A stretch of DNA of 41,650 bases, taken from contig MCFE01000731.1 of NCBI GenBank assembly GCA_002104905.1, positions 1 to 41,650 on the forward strand. The letters run 5' to 3'. The position numbers and the translations under genes were made by a program. This document shows, piece by piece, positions 7,098 through 37,046 of this stretch (positions are counted from its first letter, which is position 1; each line of letters starts with the position of its first letter). The DNA comes from Basidiobolus meristosporus CBS 931.73. Lineage: Eukaryota > Fungi > Basidiobolomycota. The notes below the pieces were generated by a model. That model did no database searches, was not told where the DNA came from, and saw only the letters and a program-made list of their open reading frames with translations.

Positions 7098-7215
7098 ACG
7101 CAGCTTTCCTTCCTCTTGCTTGTTGCGGCAATCACATCTTTGTCAACCTCAGGTATCTCACAACAACAACCTATGTGCTGAGCAGTTGGGAGCTTGTTAT
7201 CAGGAGGCACTGGCT
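7098..7215 (+). pseudogene. Family B 5' fragment (start ATG>ACG)
   Basis: gtcacgcagctttccttcctcttgct...gagcttgttatcagga aligns with the start of the 18432 gene (gtcatgcagctttccttcctcttgct...gtgcttgttatcagga). Confidence 0.65.
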
Positions 7216-9775
7216 TCCAACAACAAGGACCAATCCTTGACTGGCAATGAAGGTGACTTAGATATGAGTGATTGAATTCTAATAAATAAAGTTGCAAAGA
7301 ATTGACATTTTTAAAGGCTCCTTTTCCAGTGAGGCCAATGCATTATTGAACCTTAAGTAGTTTGACAAAGCATAGGTCATCAATTAGACCCTTTATCTAC
7401 CCATCATGAATGTAAGAGATTTGCCTGGTGGTTATACTCTGACTTGCCAGCCTCATGTGCTTCAAAGTTGTTGAGAACCATTGTTGATTATTACATAGAA
7501 CTATGCACCTCAAGATGGCTTCATGTTACTGTGTGCTATTAGCCAGCTTTTGCTTCCTTAATAAGTGAGTAAACAACTGAGTTCCATACCAATCACACAC
7601 AAGTATGAAGGCAGCAAGTGCAGCTAAGATATAAACATTGTGAATGCACATTTAAATCTACCACTACATGCATATACAGAGAGCTTAGAATGCAGGATTT
7701 CCAGCAGTTCTCATCTAGCCTATGCTCCCATATATAGCACTTCTAGGCCACATCAAGGAGTTAGCTTGTAATTCCCAAGTTCATACTGGTGTATATGTTT
7801 TGCTTCAAATATTGTTTTTATTTACCAAAGTGTTATTGTGTAGCTATAGTGGCATAGTAGCTTTCCTCTGCACTGAATACTTGCATTGTAGATTGAAACT
7901 ATTGGTTCATGACCAAGCAATACAGTTCTACTATTGTTGGTATATATTGGTGACTATATATAGTTTGATCAATATGGTATTATTTATGCTATACATAAAT
8001 CACTTTTAGTCAGCATACACACATATTTTGAAGAGCATTACCAACATGCACTGGAGCTAAAGCATCTCACTCATTGCAATGTTGTATAAAATCAAGGAGT
8101 GCTCAACATCCTGAAGGAGCCCAACACTCAATACAATATGCCTAATTCACCAGTTTGCATGAGTATCCATACCTTGTGCACCATCAAGATTCTCAAGGAT
8201 ACATTGAATTCACCCTAATATATATGAGCTAGTCTTTATGAGTAATGATGAAAGGCTGCTATGTATTGGTAATATCCATGGTAAGTGTTGAAGGAATTTC
8301 TAAAATTGTAGACAAAGGTAGCTAAACTTTATGTGAGCAATTTTGACACATGCTATCAGTTTGTTGCAGGATTCTTGGAGATATTGGAGTTTACTGAGTG
8401 AGTAAGTAGATTATTTAGCATTCACTCAATGATATGTTGTAAGTAAAAGTAGTATTTGTACTTTTGGACACTTTTTGCAAGACAAGCATGTAAAATATGC
8501 TGAGGAATGTTCCAAGAGTATGTGTGCAAAGTTTGGGGCTGTATTGGCTACTTGGTGATATTTCATTTCCTAAGTGCCTGTACTTTTAGGTGGAGCTATT
8601 TCAAGTGAATGCCAACAAGAAGCTTGGTTGGAGCTCTCTTAGACCTGTAGGCTATAATCTAAGTGATCAAGTTAGGTGGATGTTTAGGTGTAATTACAAA
8701 ATTTAACATGTAATGTATTTGATGTGTGCAATAGTTTTGTGTGCCTGAATATCTAGTTCATTATCTTGGGCATACATTAGAAGACACAATGTAATATGCA
8801 TGGAGCTCTGGGCCCAGTATACTTTGTCAGGAGTGTAACCCCAGCTTCAGTGATCCAACCAAAAAGCACCTGTATAGTACACCCAGCCCTCCATTTGGTT
8901 TTTGATATTACCATATCCTATTCTCTTCTACTGCCTTTGGTTCAGTCCAATCTTGACTATATAAGCTCCCAAGCTTCTGGTCTAGCAAATATCTGGTTGA
9001 GGCAGAGAGATGATGGTGAAGAAAATGCTGTGTACCTGAATCATAAGCATTATCACTGTCAAAACTTAATTATTCATATATAGTTAGAACTGATTAACAG
9101 AGTCAAAAAATCTTTTAATAGGTTCATTGCCTCATCATGGTAATGGTAAATGCCAAATATTGACCTCTAGGTGCTCACTCAACTCAAGTGACCCCAGTGA
9201 AGCGGTACTAATGCAGTGCCCTTGCCTCCCCAAGACAGTCTTAAATGCAATCCTGAACAAGGAGTGAAGGAACACACTGCTGGCCTTTACATCAACAAAT
9301 TGGCCAAGATTGACTTCATTACCCTGACTTTCAATGCCGCCAACCAAGGCAAGAATGAAGGTCTCAACCACAGAGTGAAGGACTTAAATCTAGCTATCTT
9401 GGATGAGGCTGATACCTCTGCATCAGGAGGATATGCTACATTTGCCGTATAAACTTATTTTATGGGGAGAAGCTATGCATGGCAGTCATTTATTCAATGA
9501 CTTGGAGTGTGGCGCCTTCCTGCTTAGTGATGGAACATGGGTACCAATGGGCTCGCATATCAAACCTTCATTCAGGCAAGCTACACTGATAAATCAATTG
9601 TGGGAATCCAGGTTTTCGAGTGTATTGGCACAGTCAATGCCGAACACATATAACTAATCTAAAGTGCGTATATTACAACAAGAAAGTCCAAGATAGCCTC
9701 AACTAATCCATGTATATTGTCGACTCTTGACAAACAACCAATAAATTTATTCAAACCAGTACTATAAGCCAACCG

Positions 9776-9852
9776 GGTTAAATCAATCTATCTTGCATAA
9801 TGCTATGAACGAAGCCTAATTGAATGGGATTGAGAAGGTTTAATAAATCGGG
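9776..9852 (+). promoter_or_regulatory. Orphan copy of the family B upstream/promoter module
   Basis: ggttaaatcaatcta...gcataa...tgctatgaacgaagcctaattga.tgggat.gag...taaatcgg also occurs at 10460-10510, 18322-18400 (directly upstream of the intact B gene, with TATAAA) and partially at 20609-20640. Confidence 0.6.
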
Positions 9853-10533
9853 AAAGCTCCGCGTAGATGCGTAGAAGATTGTATATCAACGACTGAACCA
9901 GCTTTACGACCAATCAAAGGATTATTGCAATTATGGGTGCAAACAAGAACCATCCTCAAAAAAGCAAAGCAATATCCGCTAGTTGTTAGGAGTGACCATT
10001 CAAGAAACACTTAACGACAAAATGCTTTTCATAAATATCCTCTTAGCTGGATCGCTTTGAGCAGACAGCAAAAAGCTCAAACCTCGTCTGTGGGATTACT
10101 AAGCAAAAAGGCGGCAAGGATATGTAACAAAGGCTACTGCTGGAGAAGGGTAAGTTGCCATGGAGTTTTCTGTACAGAAACAGTAACTTACAAGGTATTC
10201 AGTGCCATGGAGGAGTAGCGATTATCTCGTTTGGCATTGGATATGTAGCAAAGTGCACCAGAGTGGTGTTACATCAACAATATCCAAAGGTTTAGTAAGT
10301 TTGCATTCTTACTGACGCTAAAGTCTTTTTGCAGTGGCTCCGAATATCATACTGCTAGCTTTATACTATAAAGCACTTGGTTGAAATTAAATGCTGATTA
10401 CTATTTCGTGTATGCACTGTCTCACATTTTTTGAGAAGTAGCAAACGGCGAGGCACCCAGGTTAAATCAATCTAGCTCGCATAAAGCTAATTGTGTGGGA
10501 TCGAGAGAGTCCGCATGACTTCACCAATCAGTC

Positions 10534-10970
10534 ATGCAGCCTTCCTTCCTGTTGCTAGTTTCCGCCATCGCTTCACTGCAAGCAATCTCCGCTACCCCAC
10601 TTGGTGGCTCCCAGGTAGCCTCAACCAATGAGCCATGCGTCGAACAACTGGGTGCTTGTTATCAGGACACTTAGGCCCCTAGTCAAGAACACCAGCCGTC
10701 AACTGAGGAGGTGGATGATTCGGAGATGAGTGGGCCAATGCAAACGAGCCAGACTTCGGGTTGCAAGGGTTTGACATTTCAAATTTACAACCATGCCTTA
10801 CTGGACAACATCAATGGCCATTCTGCCAGTAAAGCCAATGCCTTGTCCAACTCAAATCAGTTCGATCAGGCGCAAGTCATTGATCAAACCCTCTACAAAT
10901 TATCATCACTCAGCCAGCAGTAGAGGTGGGTACAAGAAGTATTTTAGCTCTGCTCGTCGCCACTTCAAAG
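10534..10970 (+). pseudogene. Family B pseudogene
   Basis: Highly similar to 18432-18956. In-frame TAG at 10672 (TCG in the intact copy), plus internal deletions that shift the frame. Confidence 0.9.
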
Positions 10971-11184
10971 ATACTCCAGAAAATCATCGTGAGTTCCACA
11001 AAATAATGGAAGAAAATTGAAAAAATAACGAGTGAAGGGAATGCAAAATACCGATGGTACTCAAAAAGTATAATAATTGTGTGAGTAATGACCTGATTAA
11101 TCCATGAAATATATAATAGCAATTTTCCCAGCTAACCCATATTGTATGCTATACAACAGCCTACAAATACGTTATTCGCTCCAC

Positions 11185-11667
11185 ATGCGCTTTATTACTG
11201 TAGGCCTTGCCGCGAATCAAGTTGCCGTTGCTGCCCTAATCGGCTGTTCTTCTACATGCACTCGCGAGTATAGAAGGGTTCATTATCGCAGTTTACCATG
11301 TGTACAGTATGCGACCGATTACCACCAAAACGTTCGAGTTTTGCCTGTTTTTAAGACACCCAATGTCCGATCCCCGTTATTGCGTCAGGTTTTCACCACC
11401 GTGACCAGAAAGCAAGATAGCCTGAACACTGCTAATGCCAACAGCAATAAGGGCTTCAGTGTCAAGTATCAAGCAGGGCCCAGTCTTGAACTGGAGGGTC
11501 GGGGCAACGCATTAGAATATGCCAAGCAAAATGACTGTAGTTCTTTCTCTCCCTACGTTCTGATGCAGCCCAACCAAGATGTACAGTACACAACCCTAGT
11601 AACAGAGATACAATGCGTAAAAGAACAAAATATTCCATACACTCATTGTGCTGACAATTGCACCTAA
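11185..11667 (+). CDS. Family A secreted protein, 160 aa, open frame but shortened signal peptide (possibly decaying)
   Basis: MRFITVGLAANQVAVAALIGCSSTC...PLLRQVFTTVTRKQDSLNTANANSNKGFSVKYQAGPSLE...HCADNCT*; a paralog of 19318, 27870 and 32394. Confidence 0.7.
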   Translation: MRFITVGLAANQVAVAALIGCSSTCTREYRRVHYRSLPCVQYATDYHQNVRVLPVFKTPNVRSPLLRQVFTTVTRKQDSLNTANANSNKGFSVKYQAGPSLELEGRGNALEYAKQNDCSSFSPYVLMQPNQDVQYTTLVTEIQCVKEQNIPYTHCADNCT

Positions 11668-14925: not shown

Positions 14926-15123
14926 ATGATGAAGAAATTTGCTGTCTCCTTGATGGTCGCCTTCCTTGTGGCCAGCTCCAGTTCCGGCTCCGTAGATGCT
15001 CTCTCGTGCCAAGCCCAAGGGAACTCAAGAGGCTCCTTGTGCGTTTCCGGTAGCTGCCCCACCGGTTGGAGATCCGTGTTCTGGGATACTGGATGCAAGT
15101 CTGGCCAAAGATGCTGTATCTGA
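14926..15123 (+). CDS. Secreted beta-defensin-like 6-Cys peptide, copy 1 (65 aa; ~40 aa mature)
   Basis: Signal peptide MMKKFAVSLMVAFLVASSSSGSVDA plus LSCQAQGNSRGSLCVSGSCPTGWRSVFWDTGCKSGQRCCI; Cys spacing C-x10-C-x4-C-x12-C-x5-CC. TATATA at ~14865. Confidence 0.85.
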   Translation: MMKKFAVSLMVAFLVASSSSGSVDALSCQAQGNSRGSLCVSGSCPTGWRSVFWDTGCKSGQRCCI

Positions 15124-15589: not shown

Positions 15590-15787
15590 ATGATGATGAA
15601 GTTTGCAGTCTCCCTGATGGTTGCCTTCCTTGTGGCCAGCTCCAGTTCCGGCTCCGTAGATGCTCTCTCGTGCCAAGCCCAAGGGAACTCAAGAGGCTCC
15701 TTGTGCGTTTCCGGTAGCTGCCCCACCGGTTGGAGATCCGTGTTCTGGGATACTGGATGCAAGTCTGGCCAGAGATGCTGTATCTGA
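15590..15787 (+). CDS. Secreted beta-defensin-like 6-Cys peptide, copy 2
   Basis: Tandem duplicate 664 bp downstream of copy 1, with an identical mature peptide. Confidence 0.85.
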   Translation: MMMKFAVSLMVAFLVASSSSGSVDALSCQAQGNSRGSLCVSGSCPTGWRSVFWDTGCKSGQRCCI

Positions 15788-16176: not shown

Positions 16177-16234
16177 TATTCACCCTATTCACCCTACTCA
16201 CCCTACTCACCCTATTCACCCTATTCACCCTATT
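16177..16234. repeat. 9-bp tandem repeat x6 (TAYTCACCC)
   Basis: tattcaccc x2, tactcaccc x2, tattcaccc x2, tatt; reads (GGGTGARTA)n on the minus strand. Confidence 0.9.
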
Positions 16235-18431: not shown

Positions 18432-18956
18432 ATGCAGCTTTCCTTCCTCTTGCTAGTTTCCGCCATCGCTTCGTTGCAAGCAATCTCCGCTACCCCACTC
18501 GGTGACTCCCAGGTAGCCTTCACCAATGAGCCATGCGTCGAACAACAGGGTGCTTGTTATCAGGACACTTCGGCCCCCAGTCAAGAATACCAGCCGTCAA
18601 GTGAGGAGGGTGATGATTCGGAGATGAGTGAGCCAATGCAGACAAGCGAGACTTCGGGTGAGCAGCCAGGATCCTCTGGGTTGCAAGGGTTCGATATTTC
18701 CAATCTTCAACCATCCCAAGCCTTGCTGGACAAAATCAATGGCCATTCCTCCAGTAAAGCCAATGCCTTGTCCAACTCAAACCAGTTCGACCAAGCGCAA
18801 GTCATCGACCAAACCCTGTACCAGCCCAAGCAGCAACAGCCACAAATTATCATCACTCAGCCAGCAGCGCGTGCGCTTAGAGGTGGGTACAAGAAGTATA
18901 AGAGATCTGCTCGTCGCCACTTCAAAGTGAGATATTTCAGTGGAAACAGACATTAA
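18432..18956 (+). CDS. Family B secreted protein, 174 aa (acidic N-half, N/Q core, basic tail)
   Basis: MQLSFLLLVSAIASLQAISA signal; PCVEQQGACYQ; LLDKINGHSSSKANALSNSNQFDQAQVIDQTLYQP; tail GGYKKYKRSARRHFKVRYFSGNRH. TATAAA at ~18391. An alternative in-frame ATG lies at 18411. Confidence 0.85.
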   Translation: MQLSFLLLVSAIASLQAISATPLGDSQVAFTNEPCVEQQGACYQDTSAPSQEYQPSSEEGDDSEMSEPMQTSETSGEQPGSSGLQGFDISNLQPSQALLDKINGHSSSKANALSNSNQFDQAQVIDQTLYQPKQQQPQIIITQPAARALRGGYKKYKRSARRHFKVRYFSGNRH

Positions 18957-19317: not shown

Positions 19318-19815
19318 ATGCGCTCTACTACCGTAGCAGTGATTCTAAGCCTTGCCGCTCTTCAAGTTGCCGTTGCTGCCCCAATCGGCTGTTCTTCTCC
19401 ATGTACTCGCGAGTATAGAGGGGTTCATTATCGCAGCTTACCATGTGCACAGTATGCGAGCGATTGCTACCAAAACGTTCGAGTTTTGCCTGTCGTTAAG
19501 ACGACGAATGTCCAATCCCCGTTATTGCGCCAGGTTTTCACCACCGTGACCAGAAAGCACGATAACCTGAACATTGCTAACGCCAACAGCAACAAAGGCT
19601 TCAATGTCAAGTATCAAGCAGGGCCCAGTCTCGAACTGGAGGGTGGGGCCAACGCATTAGAATACGCCAAGCAAAAGGGAGCGGAACACTCGGAAGATAG
19701 TTCTTTCTCTCCCTACGTTCTGATGCAGCCCACTCAAGATGTACAATACACGGCCCCTGTCGCAGAAATGCAATGCGTAGAAGATTGCCCAGAGCAAAAT
19801 GTTCAATACAATTAG
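19318..19815 (+). CDS. Family A secreted protein, 165 aa (C-terminus truncated by TAG just before the last Cys pair)
   Basis: MRSTTVAVILSLAALQVAVA signal; family A core PLLRQVFTTVTRKHDNLN.ANANSNKGFNVKYQAGPSLE. Confidence 0.85.
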   Translation: MRSTTVAVILSLAALQVAVAAPIGCSSPCTREYRGVHYRSLPCAQYASDCYQNVRVLPVVKTTNVQSPLLRQVFTTVTRKHDNLNIANANSNKGFNVKYQAGPSLELEGGANALEYAKQKGAEHSEDSSFSPYVLMQPTQDVQYTAPVAEMQCVEDCPEQNVQYN

Positions 19816-20608: not shown

Positions 20609-21060
20609 TAAGTGGGATCGAGAAGGTGATATAAATCGGGAGTACAAGAAGTTACGCCACTTCAAAGTATGCTCCAGAAAATCATGGTGAGTCCCACAAA
20701 ACAATGGAAGAAATGAGTAAAAATAAGAACTATGGACATGTGTGAGGGGAATGCAGAATGCTGACAATCGTTAGAAGTGTGCCTGCAGGAACGCAACAGT
20801 AGCAGAGACAGAACTAAACGTTCAATACAATTAGTGTGCCGACAATTGCGCCCAACAGATAAATAAAGTTGAACTGAGAATAATCATTCTTTGCACAGTC
20901 TCACAGACTATTGCTCCATCCTCATTAAAATCAATTTCCATAACTGAATGTTCAAGTGGGCACACAACTTTGCATAAAAACTGGGAAATAGTAAGTTGGT
21001 AGTCAAACTTTATTGTAGTGGCTACTGTTGACCATCCACTCATACTGCTAATACCCACTC
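20609..21060 (+). pseudogene. Collapsed remnant of a B+A tandem unit (B promoter, B 3' end, A 3' end, downstream block)
   Basis: agtgggatcgagaaggtgatataaatcgg; gtacaagaag...cgccacttcaaag; gttcaatacaattagtgtgccgacaattgc. 20940-21050 matches 12720-12840. Confidence 0.7.
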
Positions 21061-22537: not shown

Positions 22538-25190
22538 ATCCTGTGGTGGATCCACTGTCCTCTAAATTTTGTCCCCAATCAATATCAGGGTATCACAAAA
22601 GATCCTGTAATGAGCTCCTACAAGTGTACCTCAAGTGTCTCAGCAGATCTATTTAGTTATCTAAAATCAGCATAAGTGCCACAATAACATTGGATATATA
22701 GTACTGATTGAGCTGGCACACAATTGCCACTGAATATACAATATTTGGGTATGTTCTAATCAGATATACATTGGGCTGCTAGCCATATATTGGTAAGTGA
22801 ATACTGGGCTTTCAGATGGCGCCAAGCCCTGTTGATTTGGTAGAATGTTGACCAAGATAAGATGTATCTCCACTGTAATAGCTGCTGATTCACAGTTTTT
22901 CTTTTGGTACTTCTTAAGTATTTCTTGAATGTACTTGAACTGGCTGAGAATAGTAGTCTGGGTTCCTCTGACTTTGGAGTATGTTTTCCTTACAAATTAA
23001 CTGAGCTCTCCTAGATTGGACATTCTGAACTCCTTAAATTGGATGAATTTATTCACCTCTGATTTTTCTTGCTTATTGGTGGCTATAATAAGATTAGACA
23101 TATATAGAGCTAGTAAAACTGGAATCTCACTATCTATTGTACAGTAGATACTATGGTCAGAATCACTACTCTGAATACTAAAAGATTATAAATAGGGATC
23201 TATCTTGCAATTTGAAGCTCTTGGTGATTATAAGATACCATATTGAGATTTTTTAAGTTTGCAGATCTGATAAGGGTTATCTTGGTCAAAGAACTCATCA
23301 GGCTGGTTCATGTTTACTTCCTTATGATGTTTATCACTCAAAAATGCTGCTTATACATCTATTTGACACATTTACAACTTTGACTTGGCTTCAGTAGGCA
23401 ATATCAATCTGATGGAATTCAATTTGACTACTAGTCAAAGATATTGGTGTGGCCCAGTCCAATTGATTGAGAGTACCCTTTTGTCACAGGCCTTGCTTTG
23501 TATCCTTCAGTTGTACCATCAGCCTTAATTTGTCTTGAAGACCCATCTGCATACAGCTGATTTTTAGTTGACTGATAATTTAACACAGCCCAAAATTTAA
23601 TTATCTGTTGGGACCAGATATTTCTCAGTCATTGCAGATCTTCAAAACCTTCTCTGAGGGCTATTGCAGGCCTCCTTTACAGTCTGGGGCCCATCACTAT
23701 ATACTGAAGAGGCATAGGCCAAGTCTGGACCCTTATTGATTTAGTAATTTGGGCTATATGAAATCCAGCTGAATATCCTGCCTTGTGAAACTCTAAAGAT
23801 CACCTCTGGGATATTTCTGAGCACTGGTTTGGACTGAAATCTAGTTGAAGAGTCCTCTGGAGTGAAAAGATTCCCATTGCTTTGCTCCAATTCAATTGGA
23901 ACTACTGGTGGATATGAGATTGAATTTCTGTTATCATCAAATAACATCTTGTGTGAAGATATTGAGTTTTACTAGACAACACATCCCTGGATCTGCTCAG
24001 CCTTTTTGCTTTGGCACTGTGGTGAATGTACACCTTACTACCATCTAAATAACCCAAAGGATGCATTTTAAACTTTTTAATGCATATTTTGGCCAATTTC
24101 CAGACAGTCTCTAAGCATATGATGAGCAGTCAACTGTTCCAAAGAGCTTTGCACTTGGTATGTAGCCATACCATGCCTTAGATGGAGTAGAATCACAACG
24201 TATGACACTATAATCCCAATTGTTAAGACATACAGCTGTGGCAAGTGATTTCTCTCAGAAATCTGAGGATAATAGCTGATCTCAGATCTTGCTGTATAGG
24301 TTATTTATCTGTGGGAATGCTCTGACACTGCAATATACTGTGTGGAGTATGGTACAGTAGTCTCTTGCTTCATCCCATGAGCTTTGCATAAGTGGATGAG
24401 CAGTTCTGAGATATATTTTCTGCCAATGCCTGAGTGTACTTTCCTAATTTATTTCTCCAGTTTCTCTCTCCACCATGCCTTTGAGCTCCCAAAGCTTAGA
24501 CAGAGCTTCTTCCTTTACTTCCATGCAAGAGACCTGCATGTATCTTGCATAATCATAATAAATGTGATTAAACATTCCATTCTGCCAAATATTATATTTT
24601 GCATAGGTCTATGCATATCAGAGCATTTTAGATCTAATGTTTTCTTAGTTTTGACTGACCCATGGCTCTCCAATGGCTATCTGGCCTGTTTCCCCTATAT
24701 GACAGCCTCACAATGCTCCTAACTGGCTGGGGGTAATCTGATCTTTAATTGTTTTGCACAAATATTCATAGCAATGTGTCCAAATGTCCTGTACCAAGGC
24801 TTTGGTGTTACTTCATTTAAGTAACTTACATCAACTTGCAGATACAATAAAGATGAGCCAGCATGTATGGATTCCAGCTTCTAATACCTAGAGCAATGTG
24901 GGCAACTCTTGTTTGTGTGCATATTTAGTTCAGATATGTATAGTCTACTGGTGGCTGATAATGCCTTCCAGGCATTCATTGTAATTTGCTGTTGCACAAT
25001 GGACTAGCAATTTGTCTTTATTGTTGGGCAAATGCAGTTAACAGCACTTTGTTCTTTCTCCTGGTACTTTAAGGCCTATGCTCCTACAGTTCTAGGAGGG
25101 CATTCTTTTCCCATAACAATGTCCCAAAGGCCTCTTTCCTGTAGCAGCATATTCATCTTCACCATCCAGACTTGATGTTAGATCCAGAAT
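22538..25190 (-). mobile_element. Truncated, internally deleted Ty1/Copia element (same family as 36695-41110), no LTRs recognised
   Basis: The reverse complement aligns with the gag start (VWMVKMNMLLQERGLWDI), integrase, RT and the start of RNase H of the intact-structure element. Many stops. Confidence 0.9.
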
Positions 25191-25609: not shown

Positions 25610-25979
25610 TTATTGACAGAGTAGGAATCTTGGTTTTGCATATATACAATAATATCTGCGGAGGCGTCGTTCACAACAAATACACGATGGTTGATCATAA
25701 TCGCCCTCATCTGGGATAGGTGGCTGAATGTATGTAGGCGTAGATGGTTGGAACAACGTCTGATCTACTAGCTGCACTTGGGAGTATTGATTCGAGTTGG
25801 AGAGAGCTTGGGCATCTTGCGCAGAGTTAGCCTGGATGCTGTCCAGCAACGGTGAGGCATCTGGGACATCCGATGGGTAGTCTGTCGATGAATATGATTC
25901 AAGGTATGGTGTCTGGTTGTTGTATGTATCGATGGGCCAAGAATACCATGGTGGATAGAATGTAGGTATTGTGGTGCAT
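25610..25979 (-). pseudogene. Family C pseudogene (20-nt frameshifting deletion after the signal peptide start)
   Basis: Relative to 33277-33657 it lacks cggtgcatcctatgcatctc (20 nt) and ttcaactga (9 nt). The downstream frame retains LLDSIQANSAQDAQALSNSNQYSQVQLVDQTLFQP. Confidence 0.85.
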
Positions 25980-26386
25980 ATTGGTACTTAGTGATACTCG
26001 ACAATTACTTTTATCCATACTTTTATACATGATAGGCATGATTGATCAACGATTGTCAGCTACCAAAGTACAGTATACTAAATTATTTAGCCAAAGTTAA
26101 TCATCATTTTATTCAGAACAACTAAATGAAGAGGCGATTATCATTGGTTTGCATGACGAAAAATAAATAAACATCAATTGCCAATTGGCATCCAAGATTG
26201 GCATTCATAAGTATTGTTCTTATGTAGCCTAATATCTAGCTTTGTCAATATTACGGGATAAAATCTATGGATATTTGACCCATTGGTCAATACTTTGCTG
26301 AGCTAGATATAGGATTTAGCATAACAAATTATGCCAACTACGGTTATAAAATGAGCCTGTGAATAGTGCTACACTGCTCATCAAGA
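25980..26386. promoter_or_regulatory. Head-to-head (bidirectional) promoter module between C(-) and B(+)
   Basis: TATAAAA on minus at ~26021-26027, TATAAA on plus at ~26345, and CCAAT/ATTGG boxes at ~26180-26205. The core ccaaagttaatcatca...agaacaactaaa recurs at 26091, 29237, 30861, 33769 and 34848. Confidence 0.6.
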
Positions 26387-26968
26387 ATGCAACTCATTAT
26401 CGCTTTATTGGCCTTCTACATTGCCTCCATCCAGGCAATCCCTGTTGCAATAGATGAAGCTTCTCAGGTCAGCTATGGTAACAATTCATGTGGGGAGCAA
26501 GTAAGCCCCTGTTACCAAGAAGCTCAATCCCCCGGATACGACTATCAACCAGAACAGGATGACGGTAGCGAGGAAGATTTCGATATGACTGAGGGCGAAG
26601 GCAAAGGTGAAGGTGAAGGCGAAGGCGGAGACTCAATGGAAGACACTACCACCCAGCCAGAGTTATCGTATAGTGCTGAGTCGGGTATTCCTGACTTCAA
26701 TATAGCTGACATACAGCCACGACAGGCCTTGTTGGACAAAGTAAATACTCACTCCTCCAATAAGGCTGATGCACTATCAAACTCCAATCAGTTTGACCAG
26801 GCCCAGGTCATCGACCAGACCCTCTATCAACCCAAGCAGCAGCAACACCAAATTATCATTACTCAGCCAGCGCCTCGTAGCTATGGTGGCAGCAGAAAGA
26901 AGTACAAGAGGTCAGCCCACAAGGATTTTAAGATCAGATATTTCAGCGGGAACAGATACTTGGATTAA
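26387..26968 (+). CDS. Family B secreted protein (divergent subtype B'), 193 aa
   Basis: MQLIIALLAFYIASIQA signal; SCGEQVSPCYQ; EG-rich acidic tract; LLDKVNTHSSNKADALSNSNQFDQAQVIDQTLYQPKQQQ; basic tail ending KIRYFSGNRYLD. Confidence 0.85.
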   Translation: MQLIIALLAFYIASIQAIPVAIDEASQVSYGNNSCGEQVSPCYQEAQSPGYDYQPEQDDGSEEDFDMTEGEGKGEGEGEGGDSMEDTTTQPELSYSAESGIPDFNIADIQPRQALLDKVNTHSSNKADALSNSNQFDQAQVIDQTLYQPKQQQHQIIITQPAPRSYGGSRKKYKRSAHKDFKIRYFSGNRYLD

Positions 26969-27869
26969 TATTACGAATAAATATCCCATTTGAAGTCATT
27001 GAAACATCAGCAGCCTTAGTGTGAAAACTGCTATACCACAGGTATTAACAATGGTTGCTACTAGCCTTGTTCAAAACCGCAACTTTAATTGAGTTTTTGC
27101 ATATAAATTCTTGATAAGCACTATTTTTTAACTTTTTGAATTTCCAGTAAGAACGCTTCTTTTGCCCCTAATATCGCTCAAAGTCACAGTCTGCCCATCT
27201 ACAGAGCCAGTAGATAAACTCAGGGAAGTGTTGGAGAGTGTCATTGAGGAAGCAAAACGCGATATGACTCATACTACGAGTTGTCAAGCGAGCGCTCGAA
27301 GCGTGCACACAGGAATGGCACTGTTCTTACGTAGATCATTATCTCATTGTCAGTTTGCAGAAATATCTTTCATCATAAATAATACCTTCGATTTTTTATC
27401 CCCAAAATTGTGGGTCTAATTATGAAAATTTTCCTCACTTCTTCTGTGGTAAATATAGCGCTACACCCTCTAGGCAACGGTAAGACTGTATATAGTACAT
27501 TCCCAGTTGCTAGTTGAGTTATAGTGAGCAGTGACTGATCGGTCCTTCGGGATTAAAGGTTGTATTCGGTTGATGAACTTGCCGGTGATTATTTCAACAG
27601 CCTGGCGAGGACGGCCCGCTCATTCTGAGAGGTTGCTAATTGATACACAGGCTAAAATAAACCATTTGATGGAAAGTATGCTTAATACAAGCAAATGAAC
27701 GAAACCTCAACAAACTCCATATAGATATAGATATATAAGCACTACCTAGCAGTTTGTTTGTAATCTATTAGTAGTGTATGGGAACCATGGGTATCCAAAC
27801 CATACTATATAACTTGCTGTGCTATATATTCATCAGTGCACTTCCGTGTGAACGGAACTATTCGACAAG

Positions 27870-28406
27870 ATGCGTTTTGCTACAGCAGCAGTGATTTTGG
27901 CCCTCGCTTCTCTTCAACTGGCGGTTGCTGCCCCAATCGGTTGCTCTTCCCCTTGTACCAGTGAGTATAAAAGGGCTCATTATCGTAGCTCACCATGTGC
28001 ACAGTATGCGGAAGGCTGCTATCAGAATGTCCAAGTGTTGCCAACCATCAAGACAACAAATATCCAAGCCCCATTGTTACGTCAGGTGTTCACTACTGTT
28101 ACCAGAAAACACGACAATCTGAACACTGCAAATGCCAGCAGTGATAAACGCTTCAACGTGGAGTACCAAGCAGGCCCCAGTCTCGAAGCAGAGGGCTCAG
28201 CTAGCGCATTAGAATACGCCAAGCAGAAGGAAGCTGAGCACTCGGATGACAGTTATTCGAATCCCTATGTCTTTATGCAGCCCACCCATGATGTGCAATA
28301 CTCAGAACCCATGGTTGAGACCCAATGCGTCTCAGACTGTCCTGAGCAAAATGAACAATATACAGAGCCTACGGAGAATACCGAGTGTGCTGATAATTGC
28401 GCTTGA
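27870..28406 (+). CDS. Family A secreted protein, 178 aa
   Basis: MRFATAAVILALASLQLAVA signal; CSSPC, PCAQYAEGCYQ, family A core and two C-terminal C-x3-C repeats. Confidence 0.88.
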   Translation: MRFATAAVILALASLQLAVAAPIGCSSPCTSEYKRAHYRSSPCAQYAEGCYQNVQVLPTIKTTNIQAPLLRQVFTTVTRKHDNLNTANASSDKRFNVEYQAGPSLEAEGSASALEYAKQKEAEHSDDSYSNPYVFMQPTHDVQYSEPMVETQCVSDCPEQNEQYTEPTENTECADNCA

Positions 28407-28764
28407 AGTAGCCTAATAAAGCTTACCTACTCTTTCTTTCAACCATGAAGAAATAGGAAATTTACTAGAAACAGTATGAATAGTATGATGCCAAGGGAGC
28501 AATACACCAATTAATGGGCACATATACCCGGGCTTAAATCTAACCCTCCCATAAATATTCACTTCATATGATGGCTGATAAGCAGGGAGGCATAATCCGT
28601 CTGTAATGATGGTGATGGAGTAGAACATATATACGTATATACCTCTTTTCTGACTAAAAGCCTGCGGAAGGGATGAATATTTACACAATGCATATCTCTC
28701 CATGTACTCTGGTTTCCCTATTTTATTATTAACAGCGTAGGAATCTCAGTGCTCCATGTTTACA

Positions 28765-29116
28765 TTAATATCTGTAGCGGCGTCGTTCACAACGACTACA
28801 CGATGGTTGATCATAATCATCACTTTGGTATTTGTCTTCGTCCTCATCTGGGATCGGTGATTGCACATATGTGGGCGTAGATGGTTGGAATAACGTCTGA
28901 TCCACCAACTGCACCTGGCCATATTGATTTGAGTTGGAGAGAGCTTGGGCATCCTGCGCAGAGTTAGCCTGGATGCTGTCCAGCAACGGAGAGGCATCTG
29001 GGACATCCGATGGGTAGTCTGTCGATGAATATGATTCAAGGTATGGTGTCTGGTTGTTGTATGTATCGATGGGCCAAGAATACTATGGTGGATAGAATGT
29101 AGGTATTGTAATGCAT
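28765..29116 (-). pseudogene. Family C pseudogene (same 20-nt and 9-nt deletions as the 25610-25979 copy)
   Basis: The 3' part is near-identical to the intact 33277 copy (PDEDEDKYQSDDYDQPSCSRCERRRYRY); the 5' part is frameshifted. Confidence 0.85.
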
Positions 29117-29883
29117 TTTGGTGCTTAGTGATACTCGACAATTACTTTTATCCACACTTTTATACATGATATACATGATAGGCATGATTCATCAATGATC
29201 ATCAGCTACCCAAGCACAGCTTACTAAATTATTTAGCCAAAGTTAATCATCATTCTATTCAGAACAACTAAATGATGAGTTGATTATCATCTCACATTCA
29301 TATCACAATCAATAGTGAAATCAATGGTGTTAATCAGTGACCAAGTTAGCCTACCATTGGGCTGCATGACGAAAAATATGTAAATATTAATTGACCAATC
29401 GGCATTCAACATTGGCATTCAATATCAGGTTTGTACTAGCAAATATCGAACCTCAAGTCTTCAACTAGGCGAGACCACTCGTGATAACTACGATTGTTTA
29501 TTTATCGTATTTACGAACCAAGTATTGTTCTTACAAAGATTATATGATATCTAGCTTTGTTAATATTACGGAATAAAATCTATGGATATATGAGCCTTGC
29601 TTTCCTGAGTTAGGTAATTATCAATTGATAGCGAGAATGCTACTTGTTGTTGCTTGGCTGGTTTTATGCGTTCCTACTATCCAAGTGACTCCTGGTTACG
29701 TTGAGATCATTTGAGCGGATATCAATAGCGTTCTTATTACCTATCCTTCATCTATCACAGCTATCTATTAAAATGTGAATACATCAACGTAGTTATGCTC
29801 ATCAATATCCAAGCCTTGATATATAGTCAAACGCACTATATATGAAAGATTGTATGAGGCAAAATACTCATTCGTCCTTCAAG

Positions 29884-30438
29884 ATGCGTGCAACTACTAT
29901 TATGATGATTTTGGCCCTTGTGTCTCTTCAGACCACCATCGCAGCCCCAGTCCCATGCTCTTCATGTTCCCGCAAGTATAGAAGAGTCCGTCAACGTAGC
30001 TCACGATGCTCTGACCAAGAAAGCAACTGCCACTCGAGTAACCAAGTTCAACCGATTGTTGAAGTGCCAAATGTCCAAGCCCCATTATTGCGACAGGTGT
30101 TCACTACCGTTACAAGGAAAAATGACAATCTCAACACTGCTAATGCGAATAGTGACAAGAGCCTTAATGTGAACTATCAGGCTGGCCCCAGCCTTGAGGC
30201 AGAAGGTGAAGCAATTGCCACTGAGTTTGCTAAACAGAAGGGGGACTCTTCCTCTGCAGATGATTCATCATATCCCGTGGTTGTGGTTCAGCCCTCGCAA
30301 GACGTTCAGTATGCAACACCAGTAGTGGATACTCAATGTATTGAAGGTTGCTCAGGCCAGGATGTACAGTACATGGAACCCCTGGCAGATGCATCATGTG
30401 GTGACAATTGTGCTGATCAGTTAACTGAGCCTATGTAA
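29884..30438 (+). CDS. Family A secreted protein (divergent subtype A'), 184 aa
   Basis: MRATTIMMILALVSLQTTIA signal; PCSSCSRKYRRVRQR; PLLRQVFTTVTRKNDNLNTANANSDKSLNVNYQAGPSLEAEG. TATATA at ~29836. Confidence 0.87.
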   Translation: MRATTIMMILALVSLQTTIAAPVPCSSCSRKYRRVRQRSSRCSDQESNCHSSNQVQPIVEVPNVQAPLLRQVFTTVTRKNDNLNTANANSDKSLNVNYQAGPSLEAEGEAIATEFAKQKGDSSSADDSSYPVVVVQPSQDVQYATPVVDTQCIEGCSGQDVQYMEPLADASCGDNCADQLTEPM

Positions 30439-31343
30439 GACACTCTGTAGTTGATCAATAAACCTCATTGATTCATATATAAGCGATCAGAAGTAGGCAC
30501 GTTACCTCTGTACTGTAACTGGAGCCTCCATTCGAGTATGTGCAATTGCCACTATGGGTGCTTCATGCTGACATGAACAACAGTGCAATTGCAACATGGT
30601 TTGTTCAATCGTAGAGTTAGTGAGGGGAGCGTACAGAGCTGCGTACTAATCAACACATATACCTTAGTGTTTATAGACCAACTAATGGGGAAAGTAGCAC
30701 ATATGGAGATAGCCTTATTTACTTAGAAATCAGATGCATAGAACACACCAACCAAGAATGTAGGCATTGTAGTATATCTCGGCGCTTAGTGATGATCGTT
30801 TATCCATACATGACTCATCAACAATCCTCGCTACCTAATACAGTTTACTAAATTATCTAGCCAAAGTTAATCATCAATTTGTTTAGAACAACTAAATGAA
30901 GAGCCGATTATCATTTCATATGCATTTCACATTCAATAGTAAAATCAGTGGTACTGATCAGCGGCCAACTTAGCCAATCATTGGGTTGCATAACGAAAGA
31001 TAAATAAACATTAATTGACCAATTGGTATTCTAGATTGGCATTCAATATCAGGTTTGTACTTGTAAATATCGAACCTCAAGTCTTCAACTAGCCGAAACC
31101 ACTCCTGATTATAAAATAAGTCTGTAAGTATGATTTTTTAGACGTATTGGCGCATCAATTTATCTTATTTACGAGCCAAGTATTGTTCTTACATAGATTA
31201 CATAAAATTTAGCTTTGTCGATATTACGGGATAAAATCTATGATGTTTGAGCCATTGTCCAATACTTTGCTGAGCTAGATATAGAGTTTAGCAACTACGG
31301 TTATAAAGTGAGCTTGTGACTGGTGCTACACTGCTCATCAAGA

Positions 31344-31419
31344 ATGCAACTCGCTATTGCTTTACTGGCCTAAGTACTCTAAGATCAGATATTTCAGTGG
31401 GAACAGATACTTGGATTAA
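31344..31419 (+). pseudogene. Family B' pseudogene with almost the whole CDS deleted
   Basis: atgcaactcgctattgctttactggcc is joined, via a few nt, to aagatcagatatttcagtgggaacagatacttggattaa. The flanks match those of the 26387 gene. Confidence 0.85.
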
Positions 31420-32393
31420 TATTACGAATAAATATCCCATTTGAAGTCACTGAAACATCAGCAGCCTTAGTGTGTGAACTGCTATACTACAGGTATTAAC
31501 AATGGTTGCTACTAGTCGTATTCTATAATATACATGAATCGCAACTATATTTTACCCTTTATGAATTTCCACGCTCCTTTTCTCTCTTGCAAACTTGTAT
31601 ATGAGGCAATTCCTATGCTCTGATGTAAATATCACTCACAGTAACAGTCTGCCAATCTACAGAGCCAGTAGATAAACTCAGGGAAGTGTTGGAGAGTGTC
31701 ATTGAGGAAGTAAAAAGCGATATGACTCATACTACGAGTTGTCAAGCGAGCGCTCGAAGCGTGCACACAGGAATGGCACCGTTCTTACGTAGATCATTAT
31801 TTCATTGTCAAGTTGAAGGGATATCTTTCATTATAAATAATACCTTCAATTTTTTATCCCCAAAATTGTGGGTCTAATTGTGAAAATTTTCCTCATTTCT
31901 TCGGTTATACACATAGCGCTACACCCTCTAGGGAGCGATAAGACTGTATATAGTACATTCCCAGTTACTAGTTGAGTCCTAGTGAGAAGTGACTGATCGG
32001 TCCTTCGGGACTAAAGGTTTTATGCAGTTGATGATTGATTATTTCAGCAACCTGGAGAGGACGGCCTGTTCACTCTGACAGCTTGTTTATTAATATTCAA
32101 ACTAAACTAATCCATTTGATGGAGAGTATGCTCAATGCAAACAAATGAATGTCTAAACTACTGGAGACTGATAAAACTACTATAGCCTATACAAGTGAGT
32201 ATGTTATTTCACTTGCTGGATAACTCAACCTCAATAAACTCCATATAGATATAGCTATATAAGCACTACCTAGCAGTCTGTTTGTAATCTATTAGTAGTG
32301 TATGGGAACCATGGGTATCCAAACTATACTATATAACTTGTTGCGCTATATATTCATCAGTGTACTTCCGTGTGAACGGAATTATTCAACAAG

Positions 32394-32930
32394 ATGCGTT
32401 TTACTACAGCAGCAGTGATTTTGGCCCTCGCTTCTCTTCAACTGGCAGGTGCTGCTCCAATCGGTTGCTCCTCTCCTTGTACCAGCGAGTATAAAAGGGT
32501 TCATTATCGTAGCTCACCATGTGCACAGTATGCGGAAGGCTGCTATCAGAATGTCCAAGTTTTACCCACCATCAAGACAACAAATATCCAAGCCCCATTG
32601 TTACGTCAGGTGTTCACTACAGTTACCAGAAAACACGACAATCTGAACACTGCAAATGCCAACAGTGATAAAGGCTTCAACGCGAAGTACCAAGCAGGCC
32701 CCAGTCTCGAAGCAGAGGGCTCAGCTAGCGCATTAGAATACGCCAAGCAGAAGGAAGCCGAGCACTCGGATGACAGTTATTCGAATCCCTATGTCTTTAT
32801 GCAGCCCACCCATGATGTGCAATACTCAGAGCCCATGGTTGAGACCCAATGCGTCTCAGACTGTCCTGAGCAAAATGAGCAATATACAGAGCCTATGGAG
32901 AATACCGAGTGTGCTGATAATTGCGCTTGA
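32394..32930 (+). CDS. Family A secreted protein, 178 aa (recent duplicate of 27870)
   Basis: Near-identical to 27870-28406; intact ORF with a signal peptide. Confidence 0.88.
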   Translation: MRFTTAAVILALASLQLAGAAPIGCSSPCTSEYKRVHYRSSPCAQYAEGCYQNVQVLPTIKTTNIQAPLLRQVFTTVTRKHDNLNTANANSDKGFNAKYQAGPSLEAEGSASALEYAKQKEAEHSDDSYSNPYVFMQPTHDVQYSEPMVETQCVSDCPEQNEQYTEPMENTECADNCA

Positions 32931-33276
32931 AGTAGCCTAATAAAGCTTACATACTCTTTCTTTCAACCATGAAGAAATAGGAAATTTACTAGAAACAATA
33001 TGAATAGTATGATGCCAAGGGAGCAATACACCAATTAATGGGCATATATACCCGGGCTTAAATCTCACCCTCCCATAAATATTCACCTCATATGATGGCA
33101 TAATCCGTCTTTAATTATGGCGATGGAGTAGAACATAGATATATACATTTATGCCTCTTTTCTCACTAAAAGCCTGCGGAAGGGATGAATATTTACACAA
33201 TGCATATCTCTCCATGTACTCTGGTTTCCCTATTTTATTGTTAACAGCGTAGGAATCTCAGTGCTCCATGTTTACA

Positions 33277-33657
33277 TTAATATCTGTAGCGGCGTCGTTC
33301 ACAACGACTACACGATGGTTGATCATAATCATCACTTTCGTATTTGTCTTCGTCCTCATCTGGGATCGGTGATTGCACATATGTAGGCGTAGATGGTTGG
33401 AATAACGTCTGATCCACCAACTGCACCTGGTCATATTGATTTGAGTTGGAGAGAGCTTGGGCATCTTGCGCAGAGTTAGCCTGGATGCTGTCCAGCAACG
33501 GTGAGGCATCTGGGACATCCGATGGGTAGTCTGTCGATGAATATGATTCAGTTGAATCAAGGTATGGCGTCTGGCTGTTGTATGCATCGATGGGAGATGC
33601 ATAGGATGCACCGGCCAAGAATACTATGGTGGATAGAATGTAGGTATTGTAATGCAT
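33277..33657 (-). CDS. Family C secreted protein, 126 aa (only intact C copy)
   Basis: MHYNTYILSTIVFLAGASYA signal; PLLDSIQANSAQDAQALSNSNQYDQVQLVDQTLFQP; acidic tract; C-terminal CSRCERRRYRY. The ORF track starts 20 codons upstream. Confidence 0.85.
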   Translation of the reverse strand: MHYNTYILSTIVFLAGASYASPIDAYNSQTPYLDSTESYSSTDYPSDVPDASPLLDSIQANSAQDAQALSNSNQYDQVQLVDQTLFQPSTPTYVQSPIPDEDEDKYESDDYDQPSCSRCERRRYRY

Positions 33658-34221
33658 ATTGGTGCTTAGTGATACTCGACAATTACTTTTATCCATACTT
33701 TTATACATGATAGGCATGATTGATCAACGATTATCAGCTACCCAAGCACAGCTTACTAAATTATTTAGCCAAAGTTAATCATCATTTTATTCAGAACAAC
33801 TAAATGAAGAGGCGATTATCATTTCACATGCATTTCACATACATTTCACATTCAATAGTGAAACCAGTGTTGTTGATCAGCGACCAAGTCAACCAATCAT
33901 TGGGTTGCATGACGAAAAATAAATAAGCATCAATTGACCAATTGGCATTCAAGATTGGCATTCAATATTGGGTTGGTCCTAGCAAATATCGAACCTCAAG
34001 TCTTCAACTAGGCGAGACCACTCGTGATTATAAAATCAGTCTATAAGTATGATTTACACTATACGTGTTAGCGTATTTATTTCTCGTATCCATGAGCTAA
34101 GTATTGTTTTTACATGGATTACATAATATCTAGCTTTGTCAATATTACAGGATATAGGAGCCATTAGTCGATACTTTGCTGAGTTAGATATAGGATTTAC
34201 TGTTATGCAGTTCTAGAGTTC

Positions 34222-34470
34222 TAACCAGAACAGGATGAGGGCGAAGGTGAAGGTGAAGGCAGAGACTGAATGGACGGCACTACCACTCAGCTAGAGTCAC
34301 GTGTTCCTGACTTCAAGACAAAGTCAAAGCTCACTCATCCGAGTCACCCAACCAACAACGCGGATGCACCCTCTCAGTCCAATCAGTTTGACCAAACCCT
34401 CTACCAGCAAAGCAGCAACAATCCCAAATTACCATCACTCAGCCAGAAACCGCTAGCTATGGTGGTAACA
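34222..34470 (+). pseudogene. Family B' internal fragment
   Basis: accagaacaggatga...gaaggtgaaggc...tccaatcagtttgacca...atcactcagccag...tagctatggtgg aligns with 26550-26890, with deletions. Confidence 0.75.
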
Positions 34471-35938
34471 TAATCATTGAATATACAAATCCATTGATTC
34501 ATAGAAATATACATGAATTGGGTAACTATAAAGTAACTGCGAGAATGCTACTTGTTGTTATTTGACAGGTTCAATATATTACTACCATTCAAGTGAGTCC
34601 TGGTGATATCGAGAGCGTTCTTACATCCGTCACAGCAATTGAAAGCTAATCAGCTACATCAACCATCAATATCCAAGATATAATACGTAGTCAAATGCAC
34701 TATATATCTTCCCAAGTGTATGAAGCAAAATACTCAGTAACCCTTCAAGATGCGTCTCGGTGCTTAGTGATGTTCGTTTATCCATACAGTTATACATGAT
34801 TCATCAACGATCATCACTACCCAAGTACAGTTTATTAAATTATCTAGCCAAAGTTAATCATCATTTTGTTTAGAACAACTAAAAGAGTCGATTGTCATTT
34901 CACATGCATTCCACATTCAATAGTGAAATCAGTGGTGTTAACCAATCATATGACAAAAAGTAAATAAACACCTATTTAAGATTGGCATACAATATTAGGT
35001 TAGTACTGGCAAATATCAATCCTAAGGTCTTCAACTAGGCGAGACCACTCGTGATAACTACGATTGTTTATTTATCGTATTGTTCTTACATAGATTACAT
35101 GATATTCAATATTACAGCATAAAATCTTAGATATTATTGCCATTGGATAGACCACCCATGATTATACAAATAAGCTACAATTTTCCTACACATGTTGGCG
35201 CGTTTATTAATTGTAGATATGAGCCAAGTGGTCTTCCTACTTCAAACATCTTCAAATAACACTTTATACTATTGCCAATGCTTATTTCTATTGTATAAAA
35301 TAATGGGGAGTAGGACAAGGCTATCCAGTTTGCAAGCCAGCTACGATTAGTAGTTAATTCTTAGATCGTGTCACAGTAGAAATAAACAATAAATCATAGT
35401 AGCTGGGGAAGTTGTTGGCTGGTTGTTACTAAACGTGCTGTATTAGCACGCAGTGTACACACACAAATTCATTGATGACAGAATGAAAAAGGTTTGATTA
35501 TATTTGTTTGCATTAATATCTGCGTCTACGGTTGCGTCGTTGACAACGGCTGCATGCACGCCTTCATCCAAAACGTATGACGGCACAAGCTATCAGTGTA
35601 CTGAGCAGCAATATTCTATTATTGGTAATATCTGGATATACTTGATATGTCAAAGCTTTCCTGAGTTGGGTAGTTATACAGAGATGGCAAGAATGTTACT
35701 TGCTGTTGCTTAGTTGTTTCTATATGTTGCTACTATCCAAGTGACTCCTGGTTACATTTTGGTCATTTGAATGGATATCAAAATTGTTCTTATTACCTAT
35801 TGTTCATTGATCCCAACTATCTATTACAGTGTGAATACATCAACATAGTTTTACTCACCTATATCCAAGCCTGATATATAGTCAAATTGACTATATATAA
35901 ATGAATGTATGTGGTAAAATACTCAGTAATTCTTCAAG

Positions 35939-36630
35939 ATGTGGGCAACCACTATTATGATGATTTTGTCCCTTGTGTTTCTGAAGGTCACCATTGCAGC
36001 CCCAGTTCCATGTTCCCCTTCATGTTCATACATGAATAGTAGAGTGTGCCAATGTAGCTCCCAACACTTCTACTAAGAAAGTGACCGCTACCTGAGTGAC
36101 CAAGTACAATCAATTGCTGAAGTACCAAATGTCCAAGCCCCATTATTGTAACAGGTGTTCACTACCATTACAAGGAAAAAGGACAATCTCAACACTGCTA
36201 TTACAAATAGTGACAAGTGCCTTAATGTGAGCTATCTATATGAGGTGGAAGGTGCAGCAATTGACACTGAGTTGGCTGAATACCAGGGTGCAGAATCATG
36301 TGTTGATGGTGCATTGTATCCAATTGTGGTGGTTCAGTGCTCTCAAGACATTCAGTACAATATTTTTTTATTGACAATTCAGATTAATATCCTACCCAAA
36401 GCTTGTCTAACAGTCAATTGGGATCATATGAATACATATTAAGAAAAGTCTTGATCTGGGTACCTGACAATCTGATGAAGATATTTCAAGTAAATCCCAA
36501 CAAGAAATTTCAGCAGGAAGTAGTAATAATACAGACTTAGATCTATATTCTTTGGTTAGCATGAATATTTAGGTGACAACTCAATAATTACAACAACAAT
36601 TGTGCTGATTAGTTGACTGGGCCCATGTAA
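35939..36630 (+). pseudogene. Family A' pseudogene, CpG-mutated and interrupted by an inverted LTR fragment
   Basis: Aligns with 29884-30438. It carries stops (e.g. CGA>TAA in PLL*Q), deletions and an insert at 36362-36595. Confidence 0.88.
36362..36595 (-). mobile_element. Inverted partial LTR related to the adjacent Copia LTR
   Basis: The minus strand starts TGTTGTA and contains cacctaaatattc and aaatttcttgttgggatttacttgaaatat...caggtacccagatc (compare 36716-36838). It is flanked by ACAAT direct repeats (36357-61 and 36596-600). Confidence 0.7.
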
Positions 36631-37042: not shown

Positions 37043-37046
37043 GGCT

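Follow-up and report, generated by a model that had tools for sequence, protein, structure and literature searches.

The window analyzed here, a stretch of 41,650 nucleotides from Basidiobolus meristosporus CBS 931.73 (contig MCFE01000731.1 of assembly GCA_002104905.1, positions 1 to 41,650; GC content 36-46%), harbors between positions 7,098 and 36,630 an array of short genes and their relics assigned to three families, designated A, B and C, whose products are predicted to be secreted. Basidiobolus is an early-diverging fungus with forcibly shot conidia and adhesive capilliconidia, passing through the gut of amphibians and reptiles and occasionally acting as human pathogen; to our knowledge, almost nothing has been described of its extracellular proteins. 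A sequence-only reading of the locus had taken A, B and C for three unrecognized families, always duplicated together and possibly assembling into a common extracellular structure. Here, A, B and C are described as branches, judged by profile comparison, of one modular superfamily, and the relative arrangement of its genes, the selection acting on them and the natural fusions of their modules in a sister species are considered together with the functions these features may imply.

The inventory was compiled from tblastn searches in which the intact copies served as queries and from hmmsearch comparisons of the family profiles (hidden Markov models, HMMs) against all six-frame segments of the window. 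It comprises six copies of A, all on the plus strand (four intact, one open but having damaged signal peptide, and one relic), six copies of B with the same orientation (two intact and four relics or fragments), and three copies of C, all on the minus strand (one intact and two broken) (Table 1). The previously proposed numbers of four to five open A genes, two intact B genes and one intact C gene are reproduced, with about eight relics instead of ten. Of the B-A unit supposed to lie at 20.6-20.9 kb short scraps are indeed present, but they are non-coding, and HMM search over six frames revealed no coding remnant. In the public annotation every intact copy is modeled with a single exon, in agreement with their intronless appearance. 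The basic unit has the order and orientation B→ A→ ←C, so that each C is transcribed divergently from the next B, the gap between the two spanning 0.35-1 kb.

Table 1. Members and relics of the A, B and C families in the window and fused genes of B. ranarum. aa, amino acids; LTR, long terminal repeat; ORF, open reading frame.
Feature	Position	Strand	Basis or remark
B fragment, N-terminal acidic part only	7105..7272	+	profile HMM E=8.8e-8, tblastn
B relic, in-frame stop and frame changes	10534..10987	+	tblastn, HMM
A copy, open frame (ORF 11104-11667)	11179..11667	+	signal-peptide core shortened, one Cys of N-terminal motif gone
B1, intact, 174 aa, single exon	18432..18956	+	ORF, public model, HMM
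A1, intact, 165 aa, single exon	19318..19815	+	ORF, public model, HMM
Non-coding scraps of B-A unit, 30-125 bp (B upstream, B-A spacer, A 3' end)	20611..20882	+	DNA self-match; no HMM match
C relic, frame broken; divergent from B2 over ~350 bp	25637..26039	-	tblastn, HMM
B2, intact, 193 aa, single exon	26387..26968	+	ORF, public model
A2, intact, 178 aa, single exon	27870..28406	+	ORF, public model
C relic, frame broken; public model 28765-29367 spans break with intron	28768..29176	-	tblastn, HMM
A', divergent A subfamily, intact, 184 aa, single exon	29884..30438	+	ORF, public model, HMM
B tail fragment, start of second copy of duplicated [B]-A-C segment	31360..31410	+	HMM, self-match, loose end at 31380 in genomic runs
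A3, intact, 178 aa, 96% identical to A2	32394..32930	+	ORF, tblastn, public model
C, intact, 126 aa, single exon; longer ORF reaches 33717	33277..33657	-	ORF, public model, HMM
B relic, core region only, frame broken	34285..34535	+	HMM
A' relic, three frame pieces, adjoins LTR of copia-type element	35939..36442	+	tblastn, HMM
Fusion alpha+beta+B-tail, P0058, B. ranarum	L002:3770-4735		
Fusion alpha+beta+B-tail, P0074, B. ranarum JASJQH010006971.1	L007:5900-6985	+	
Fusion alpha+beta+B-tail, P0075, B. ranarum	L009:8001-8879		
Fusion alpha+beta+C-tail, P0082, B. ranarum	L004:86-856		
Fusion alpha+beta+C-tail, 260 aa, B. ranarum JASJQH010006971.1	L007:860-1642	-	

Comparison of the family profiles by hhalign revealed a core of 38 columns common to B and C (probability 98.5%, E=2e-15), where (A/P)LLD... 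is followed by ALSN(S/Q)NQ(F/Y)(D/E)Q.Q..DQTL(Y/F)QP. This beta core, extending over about 38 residues, is centered on ALSNSNQFDQAQ..DQTLYQP. A and B in turn align over their N-termini, i.e., over the signal peptide and the motif Y-x4-C-x6-C-Y-Q, which is present at the N-terminus of A, B and fused proteins (E=4.7e-5, 68% probability); profiles of A and C gave no alignment. The A family possesses an alpha core of about 45-60 residues centered on PLLRQVFTTVTRK and stretching from PLLRQVFTTVTRK(H/N)DNLNTANA to KYQAGPSLE.EG. A cryptic internal duplication as the source of the A core and the B/C core was rejected, since hhalign found no core-to-core match. The tails are different in each family: acidic with C-x3-C repeats in A, of Lys/Arg/Tyr/Phe type in B, while in C an acidic stretch precedes C-x2-C and poly-Arg/Tyr. 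In A, one to four repetitions of a roughly 20-residue motif, Q-D-x-Q-Y-T-E-P-M-x-D-x-Q-C-x3-C, make up the acidic tail, and for this reason tail length and number of cysteines differ between A paralogues. Because B and C have their core in common and A and B their N-terminal module, the three families are, on profile evidence, branches of one modular superfamily, which compels to abandon their description as three separate unrecognized families.

The modules recur within single proteins in B. ranarum: in uninterrupted ORFs a signal peptide and the Cys motif precede the A core, which is followed, after a spacer, by the B/C core and a tail of either B or C type (Table 1). Two of these fused genes lie 4 kb apart on one contig (L007), with an unrelated gene for 293 amino acids, having no Pfam match, between them. 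A junction of another kind was observed in B. meristosporus (L008:381-1127), where the reading frame of an A tail continues into a B body that keeps its own Cys motif; it looks like a recent read-through join, and the upstream A part has a frame break. Apart from the fusions, an 11.7-kb contig of B. ranarum carries at least nine B copies (eight of them full-length) with neither A nor C, and an 8.7-kb contig carries five A genes with neither B nor C. The three-gene unit is an arrangement of B. meristosporus. The tree being unrooted, either architecture may be ancestral, the split one or the fused one with its single Cys motif.

Comparison of the window with itself showed that the segment 26921-29575 is repeated as 31372-34154 with 83-89% identity, which, together with the near identity of A2 and A3, defines B→ A→ ←C as the unit of duplication. 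The same order, B(+), A(+), C(-), is repeated at least five times over 20 kb of contig MCFE01000512.1 (L001), where most copies are intact and no genes other than A, B and C are found. With contigs told apart by their length in the match tables, A is found on about 10 of the 19 contigs bearing B, and C on several of them; such co-occurrence is far more frequent than expected by chance among the hundreds of contigs of the assembly. Thus the assertion that the families are always duplicated together holds for the window and for MCFE01000512.1, but not for B. ranarum with its separate A and B arrays. Synonymous divergence is alike across the families both between the younger unit of the window (B2, A2/A3, C) and the 20-kb array (about 1.3-1.7) and inside arrays (0.03-0.3), which is what co-duplication of whole units predicts. 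Taken at the sequence level, these comparisons show that the units owe their number to tandem segmental duplication accompanied by birth-and-death turnover. In this single genome the superfamily comprises no fewer than about 60 different protein clusters, spread over about 40 contigs, these copy numbers being upper estimates, because the broken B-A unit at 10.5-11.7 kb recurs with the same frame breaks in gene models on three other contigs (up to 100% identity over 65 residues); either dead units are copied too or some of the "paralogues" are uncollapsed haplotypes.

As for the cause of amplification, unequal recombination is favored, since the duplications are tandem segments. Transfer of the genes as transposon cargo was considered and rejected: copia-type elements interrupt the array and do not flank its units. 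One such LTR retrotransposon occupies positions 36694-41110, its 350-bp LTRs (36694-37042 and 40761-41110) being 90% alike and its gag, integrase and reverse transcriptase pieces lying in different frames; a second copy at 22538-24902 is degenerate, inverted and retains 73% identity, and a piece resembling a solo LTR is located at 8362-8708. A search for sequencing runs over a 6-kb stretch brought up none from RNA, and a search with one gene yielded only runs presumed to be of DNA. In runs X1 and X2 short contigs cover genes and spacers of the region 27800-33799 evenly, which identifies their source as genomic DNA. Word depth in these runs over 31600-31799 and 33600-33799 exceeds that of the A' region (about 1,500) by a factor of 5-8, implying that these two spacers exist in many near-identical genomic copies.

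Pairwise Nei-Gojobori estimates of the ratio of nonsynonymous to synonymous divergence (dN/dS) point to purifying selection in all three families, the overall values being 0.1-0.3: old pairs (dS 1.2-2.3) gave 0.10-0.24 and recent pairs (dS 0.03-0.3) gave 0.17-0.85, mostly 0.2-0.5. When the corresponding proportions of differences (pN/pS) were calculated in 15-codon blocks, the ratio was found to be 0.02-0.19 in the cores, with the minimum of 0.05 for A, 0.02 for B and 0.08 for C, against 0.4-0.66 in acidic spacers and leaders. Since pS is about equal throughout, the constraint concerns the peptide sequence of the cores and not DNA or RNA. In none of the three families did the 15-codon blocks give any sign of diversifying selection. 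These patterns mark A, B and C as real genes on which selection acts; conserved cores combined with relaxed flanks would fit a structural or dosage role better than that of arms-race effectors. Upstream regions are conserved within each family and contain in all intact copies a TATA box approximately 40 nucleotides 5' of the ATG; among 8-mers looked for in the upstream regions of 19 genes, none common to all three families occurs in more than four. The suggestion of shared promoters is therefore not borne out: the TATA-type upstream regions are specific to the respective family, and no motif is common across families.

The predicted products correspond in general to their initial description. 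By inspection, all intact copies start with a hydrophobic N-terminal leader and a small-x-small cleavage site, and some members bear the label "Secreted protein" in UniRef. Mature A proteins have 144-163 residues, isoelectric point (pI) of 4.5-5.9 and 6-8 cysteines in C-x3-C and C-x6-C pairs; their first 20 residues carry a charge of +2 to +7 and the last 60 about -8 to -13. Mature B proteins (156-176 residues, pI 4.5-5.6, two cysteines) have the opposite polarity, with about -14 to -23 over the first 100 residues and +8 to +11 over the last 36. The mature C protein (106 residues, pI 4.1, two cysteines as C-x2-C) is acidic throughout, at -2 to -7 per 20 residues, and ends with +4. Thus segregation of charge, with basic N-terminus and acidic tail in A and with acidic front and basic tail in B and C, is confirmed, as are the richness in polar uncharged residues (N+Q+S+T 29-36%), the presence of 5-10 tyrosines per mature protein and the even number of cysteines in all three families; the grand average of hydropathy is -0.6 to -1.2. 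AlphaFold2 models of A and B contain an N-terminal helix at the signal peptide and no other secondary structure. Their mean confidence on family alignments (predicted local distance difference test, pLDDT) is as low as 37.8 for A and 51.2 for B, which is no proof of disorder, since the alignments consisted of only 19 close paralogues; the ESM Atlas model of the fusion P0058 has a pLDDT of 0.37. These models suggest that A, B and fused proteins are probably intrinsically disordered.

Distribution of the superfamily was assessed with a profile built from 25 A, B and fused proteins, which was compared by HMMER with 1.84 billion representative proteins (E<=0.001). Of the 42 matches, 31 were looked up, and all of them, the weakest included, originate from B. 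meristosporus or B. ranarum, the other 11 being mid-ranked. When the three ORF types were used as protein queries, nearly all entries found were K493DRAFT_* (B. meristosporus CBS 931.73), joined by some K7432_* entries (B. ranarum), annotated as "hypothetical protein". The sole relative with another label, found by word-indexed searches, is a C-like ORF on a 774-bp metagenome contig from ENA, and scanning of JGI metagenomes with the B and A profiles gave pattern matches with no true relatives among them. These searches show, within the databases covered, a superfamily restricted to the genus Basidiobolus. The claim that no known domain is present is likewise upheld: for none of the 25 members did Pfam-A yield anything at the gathering threshold, the only match, below it, being Myticin-prepro (17 bits against the cut-off of 28.5, over signal peptide and first cysteines of two A proteins), and PDB chain sequences gave no match to the A+B profile at E<=10. 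UniRef attaches the names "CBM1 domain", "SCP domain", "C2H2-type" and "C3H1-type domain-containing protein" to P0035, P0009, P0019, P0047, P0048, P0066, P0070 and P0083, which look like pattern-based mislabels; P0035 has no Pfam match, and the member sequences inspected contain only the close Cys pairs of the family. Literature searches found neither a description of these proteins nor a transcriptome or proteome study of Basidiobolus bearing on their genes.

In B. ranarum the A core is joined within single ORFs to that of B or of C, which implies that the families are functionally linked and that their parts probably act together outside the cell. We tentatively favor, as a quite possible though by no means assured reading, that in this genus-specific superfamily alpha-bearing (A) and beta-bearing (B/C) proteins act together in an extracellular material. 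In such a surface or matrix material they would be present in abundance, bind one another and lend themselves to cross-linking, candidate sites being the wall, a spore layer or the adhesive of capilliconidia. The conserved alpha and beta cores would serve as contact motifs, charged Cys-bearing tails would establish electrostatic and disulfide (possibly also Tyr) cross-links, and high copy number would provide dosage. What suggests a matrix or adhesive is that the cores are invariant and the acidic spacers free-running, that cysteines occur in close pairs and the tails contain Arg and Tyr, and that gene number is very high with no diversifying selection; it is from such features that we infer a role in spore wall or adhesion. 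A more specific version appears doubtful to us: the two cores would be partner motifs through which secreted disordered block-polyampholytes bind each other in a two-part biomaterial hitherto unknown from fungi. Arg/Tyr tails and closely spaced pairs of cysteines would then lock them into an adhesive or a spore coat of coacervate-like or amyloid-like nature and peculiar to Basidiobolus, the sticky haptor on its capilliconidia being one example, and gene number would be expanded for dosage.

Several observations weigh against this proposal of a common material. All mature proteins are net acidic (-2 to -15), so that there is no simple charge complementarity between the families, and the complementary charge ascribed to them exists between blocks only. 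The three-gene unit is not required, as A and B occupy separate homogeneous arrays in B. ranarum. Co-duplication alone is not a proof of selection for co-function, because units with dead B are copied as well (or represent uncollapsed haplotypes). If fusions are the ancestral form, co-location could reflect descent and not a join of the Rosetta-stone type. The disorder presumed for these proteins is predicted from few paralogues. Neighbors in ESM Atlas, mostly caseins, enamelin and insect cuticle proteins scoring 0.6-0.79, were taken as no more than a lead, since the best of them (0.68-0.79) stay below 0.8, which is noise level and below the scores often reached by shuffled proteins.

Known extracellular materials nevertheless offer partial parallels. 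Like arthropod cuticular proteins and secretory calcium-binding phosphoproteins of vertebrates (caseins, enamelin), the A, B and C proteins are predicted to be secreted and disordered, combine a short conserved core with variable acidic low-complexity flanks and are encoded in arrays which would serve dosage. In arthropod cuticular proteins the conserved core is chitin-binding, whereas in A, B and C neither homology to these groups, at the level of sequence or profile, nor a polysaccharide- or mineral-binding motif was recognized. With curli (CsgA/CsgB), which are two-component functional amyloids, and with fungal hydrophobins A and B share predicted secretion, N/Q-richness, adjacent genes and short beta-prone segments (QVFTTVT in A and QIIITQ in B). 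Curli are defined by tandem Curlin repeats, S-x5-Q-x-G-x2-N-x-A-x3-Q, folding as beta-solenoid; A and B have no Curlin_rpt match in Pfam, no internal core repeats or strand-turn-strand units, and their low-confidence models contain no beta-solenoid. Hydrophobins are recognized by eight cysteines arranged as C-CC-C-C-CC-C, while A has its 6-8 cysteines in spaced pairs with no CC doublets and no Pfam match.

An alternative that we also consider doubtful is that A, B and C are independent secreted binders of a conserved external target belonging to host, prey or microbe, their adjacency being a consequence of common descent and segmental duplication with no co-assembly. Homology of A to B and of B to C, the A-only and B-only arrays in B. 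ranarum, the copying of relic units alongside live ones and the lack of promoter motif common to the families are all compatible with it, the more so as clusters of lineage-specific small secreted proteins are common in fungi. At the same time, in at least five independent uninterrupted ORFs alpha and beta cores are kept conserved within a single chain, gene order and orientation are fixed in B. meristosporus arrays despite saturated synonymous sites, and the diversifying selection typical of effectors is absent. Tandem clusters of such proteins, regarded as candidate effectors, are exemplified by Ustilago, rusts and Rhizophagus. A, B and C resemble them in being short, lineage-restricted, provided with signal peptide, intronless (as is often the case there) and organized in tandem arrays with birth-and-death turnover beside transposons. 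They deviate in that conservation peaks in uncharged N/Q-rich cores under very strong purifying selection, that amplification proceeded as a fixed three-gene unit and that the modules recur fused in the sister species.

It is unlikely, in our estimation, that B and C (perhaps A as well) serve as precursors from which secreted bioactive peptides derive, where an anionic front would mask a cationic tail released or exposed outside the cell and acting as antimicrobial on gut or soil microbes or as a signal. The layout of signal peptide, acidic region and cationic tail (about +11 over the last 36 residues of B1; C-x2-C and poly-Arg/Tyr at the end of C) argues for this possibility and recalls antimicrobial prepropeptides with anionic propiece, such as amphibian skin peptides and some defensins, built in the order signal peptide, acidic spacer and cationic C-terminus. 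However, constraint is highest on the uncharged N/Q-rich cores (pN/pS 0.02-0.15) and not on the tails, whereas precursors of this kind usually keep the leader conserved and vary the mature peptide; the tails are neither amphipathic nor hydrophobic, and the A tail is acidic and has no cationic end. B. meristosporus has the highest number of Kex2-processed repeat proteins among the fungi surveyed (PMC7329392), and A, B and C resemble these in predicted secretion, in the organism and in the presence of dibasic sites, one of which, KR, is located in B. meristosporus 16-18 residues from the B end. Alignments of A, B and C contain no tandem peptide repeats bounded by KR or RR, though, and all B proteins of B. 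ranarum have KK-F at the position of the single KR, so that the Kex2 site is not conserved. Two genes for defensin-like six-Cys products of 65 residues within the window (14926-15123 and 15590-15787) are a further point in favor of peptide precursors. A cluster for peptides made by ribosomes and modified after translation (RiPPs) was rejected as candidate, genes of modifying enzymes being found neither in the array of the window nor in that of MCFE01000512.1.

Finally, that the cluster is mostly non-functional, a set of decaying gene models in a repeat-rich region never made as protein, is highly improbable: although about half of the window copies are relics, copia-type elements interrupt the region and the search for RNA runs brought up none, decay is contradicted by dN/dS of 0.1-0.3 at dS above 1 between subfamilies, by core pN/pS of 0.02, by conservation of the cores between two species and by intact and conserved TATA boxes upstream.

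Amplified clusters of lineage-specific small secreted proteins are a known kind of fungal locus; what appears new here is the fixed three-gene unit, the two near-invariant neutral cores in proteins otherwise predicted to be disordered, and the natural fusions. The superfamily is restricted to one genus, and its two short cores are near-invariant across species. Should they be interaction motifs of a surface material, they would represent a new kind of fungal structural protein and give a handle on the adhesion of Basidiobolus to animal carriers and its travel with them; if peptide precursors are encoded instead, a new class of fungal peptides would be at hand. Under either reading the question lends itself to direct testing by means of the natural fusions of A with B and of A with C.

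Other features of the window surround or interrupt the array. ORFs at 5010-6087 (+), just outside of it, match DJ-1/PfpI (E=2.5e-8) and represent an ordinary gene of housekeeping type. A tRNA-Leu(CAG) gene at 20203-20287 (-) adjoins the gutted B-A unit of 20.6-20.9 kb. The two defensin-like genes mentioned above, both on the plus strand and situated between B-A units, are near-identical and tandem, lying 664 bp apart in 280-bp repeats that are 95% alike; each product consists of a signal peptide and a mature part of about 40 residues, in which six cysteines, ending in CC, follow defensin-like spacing.

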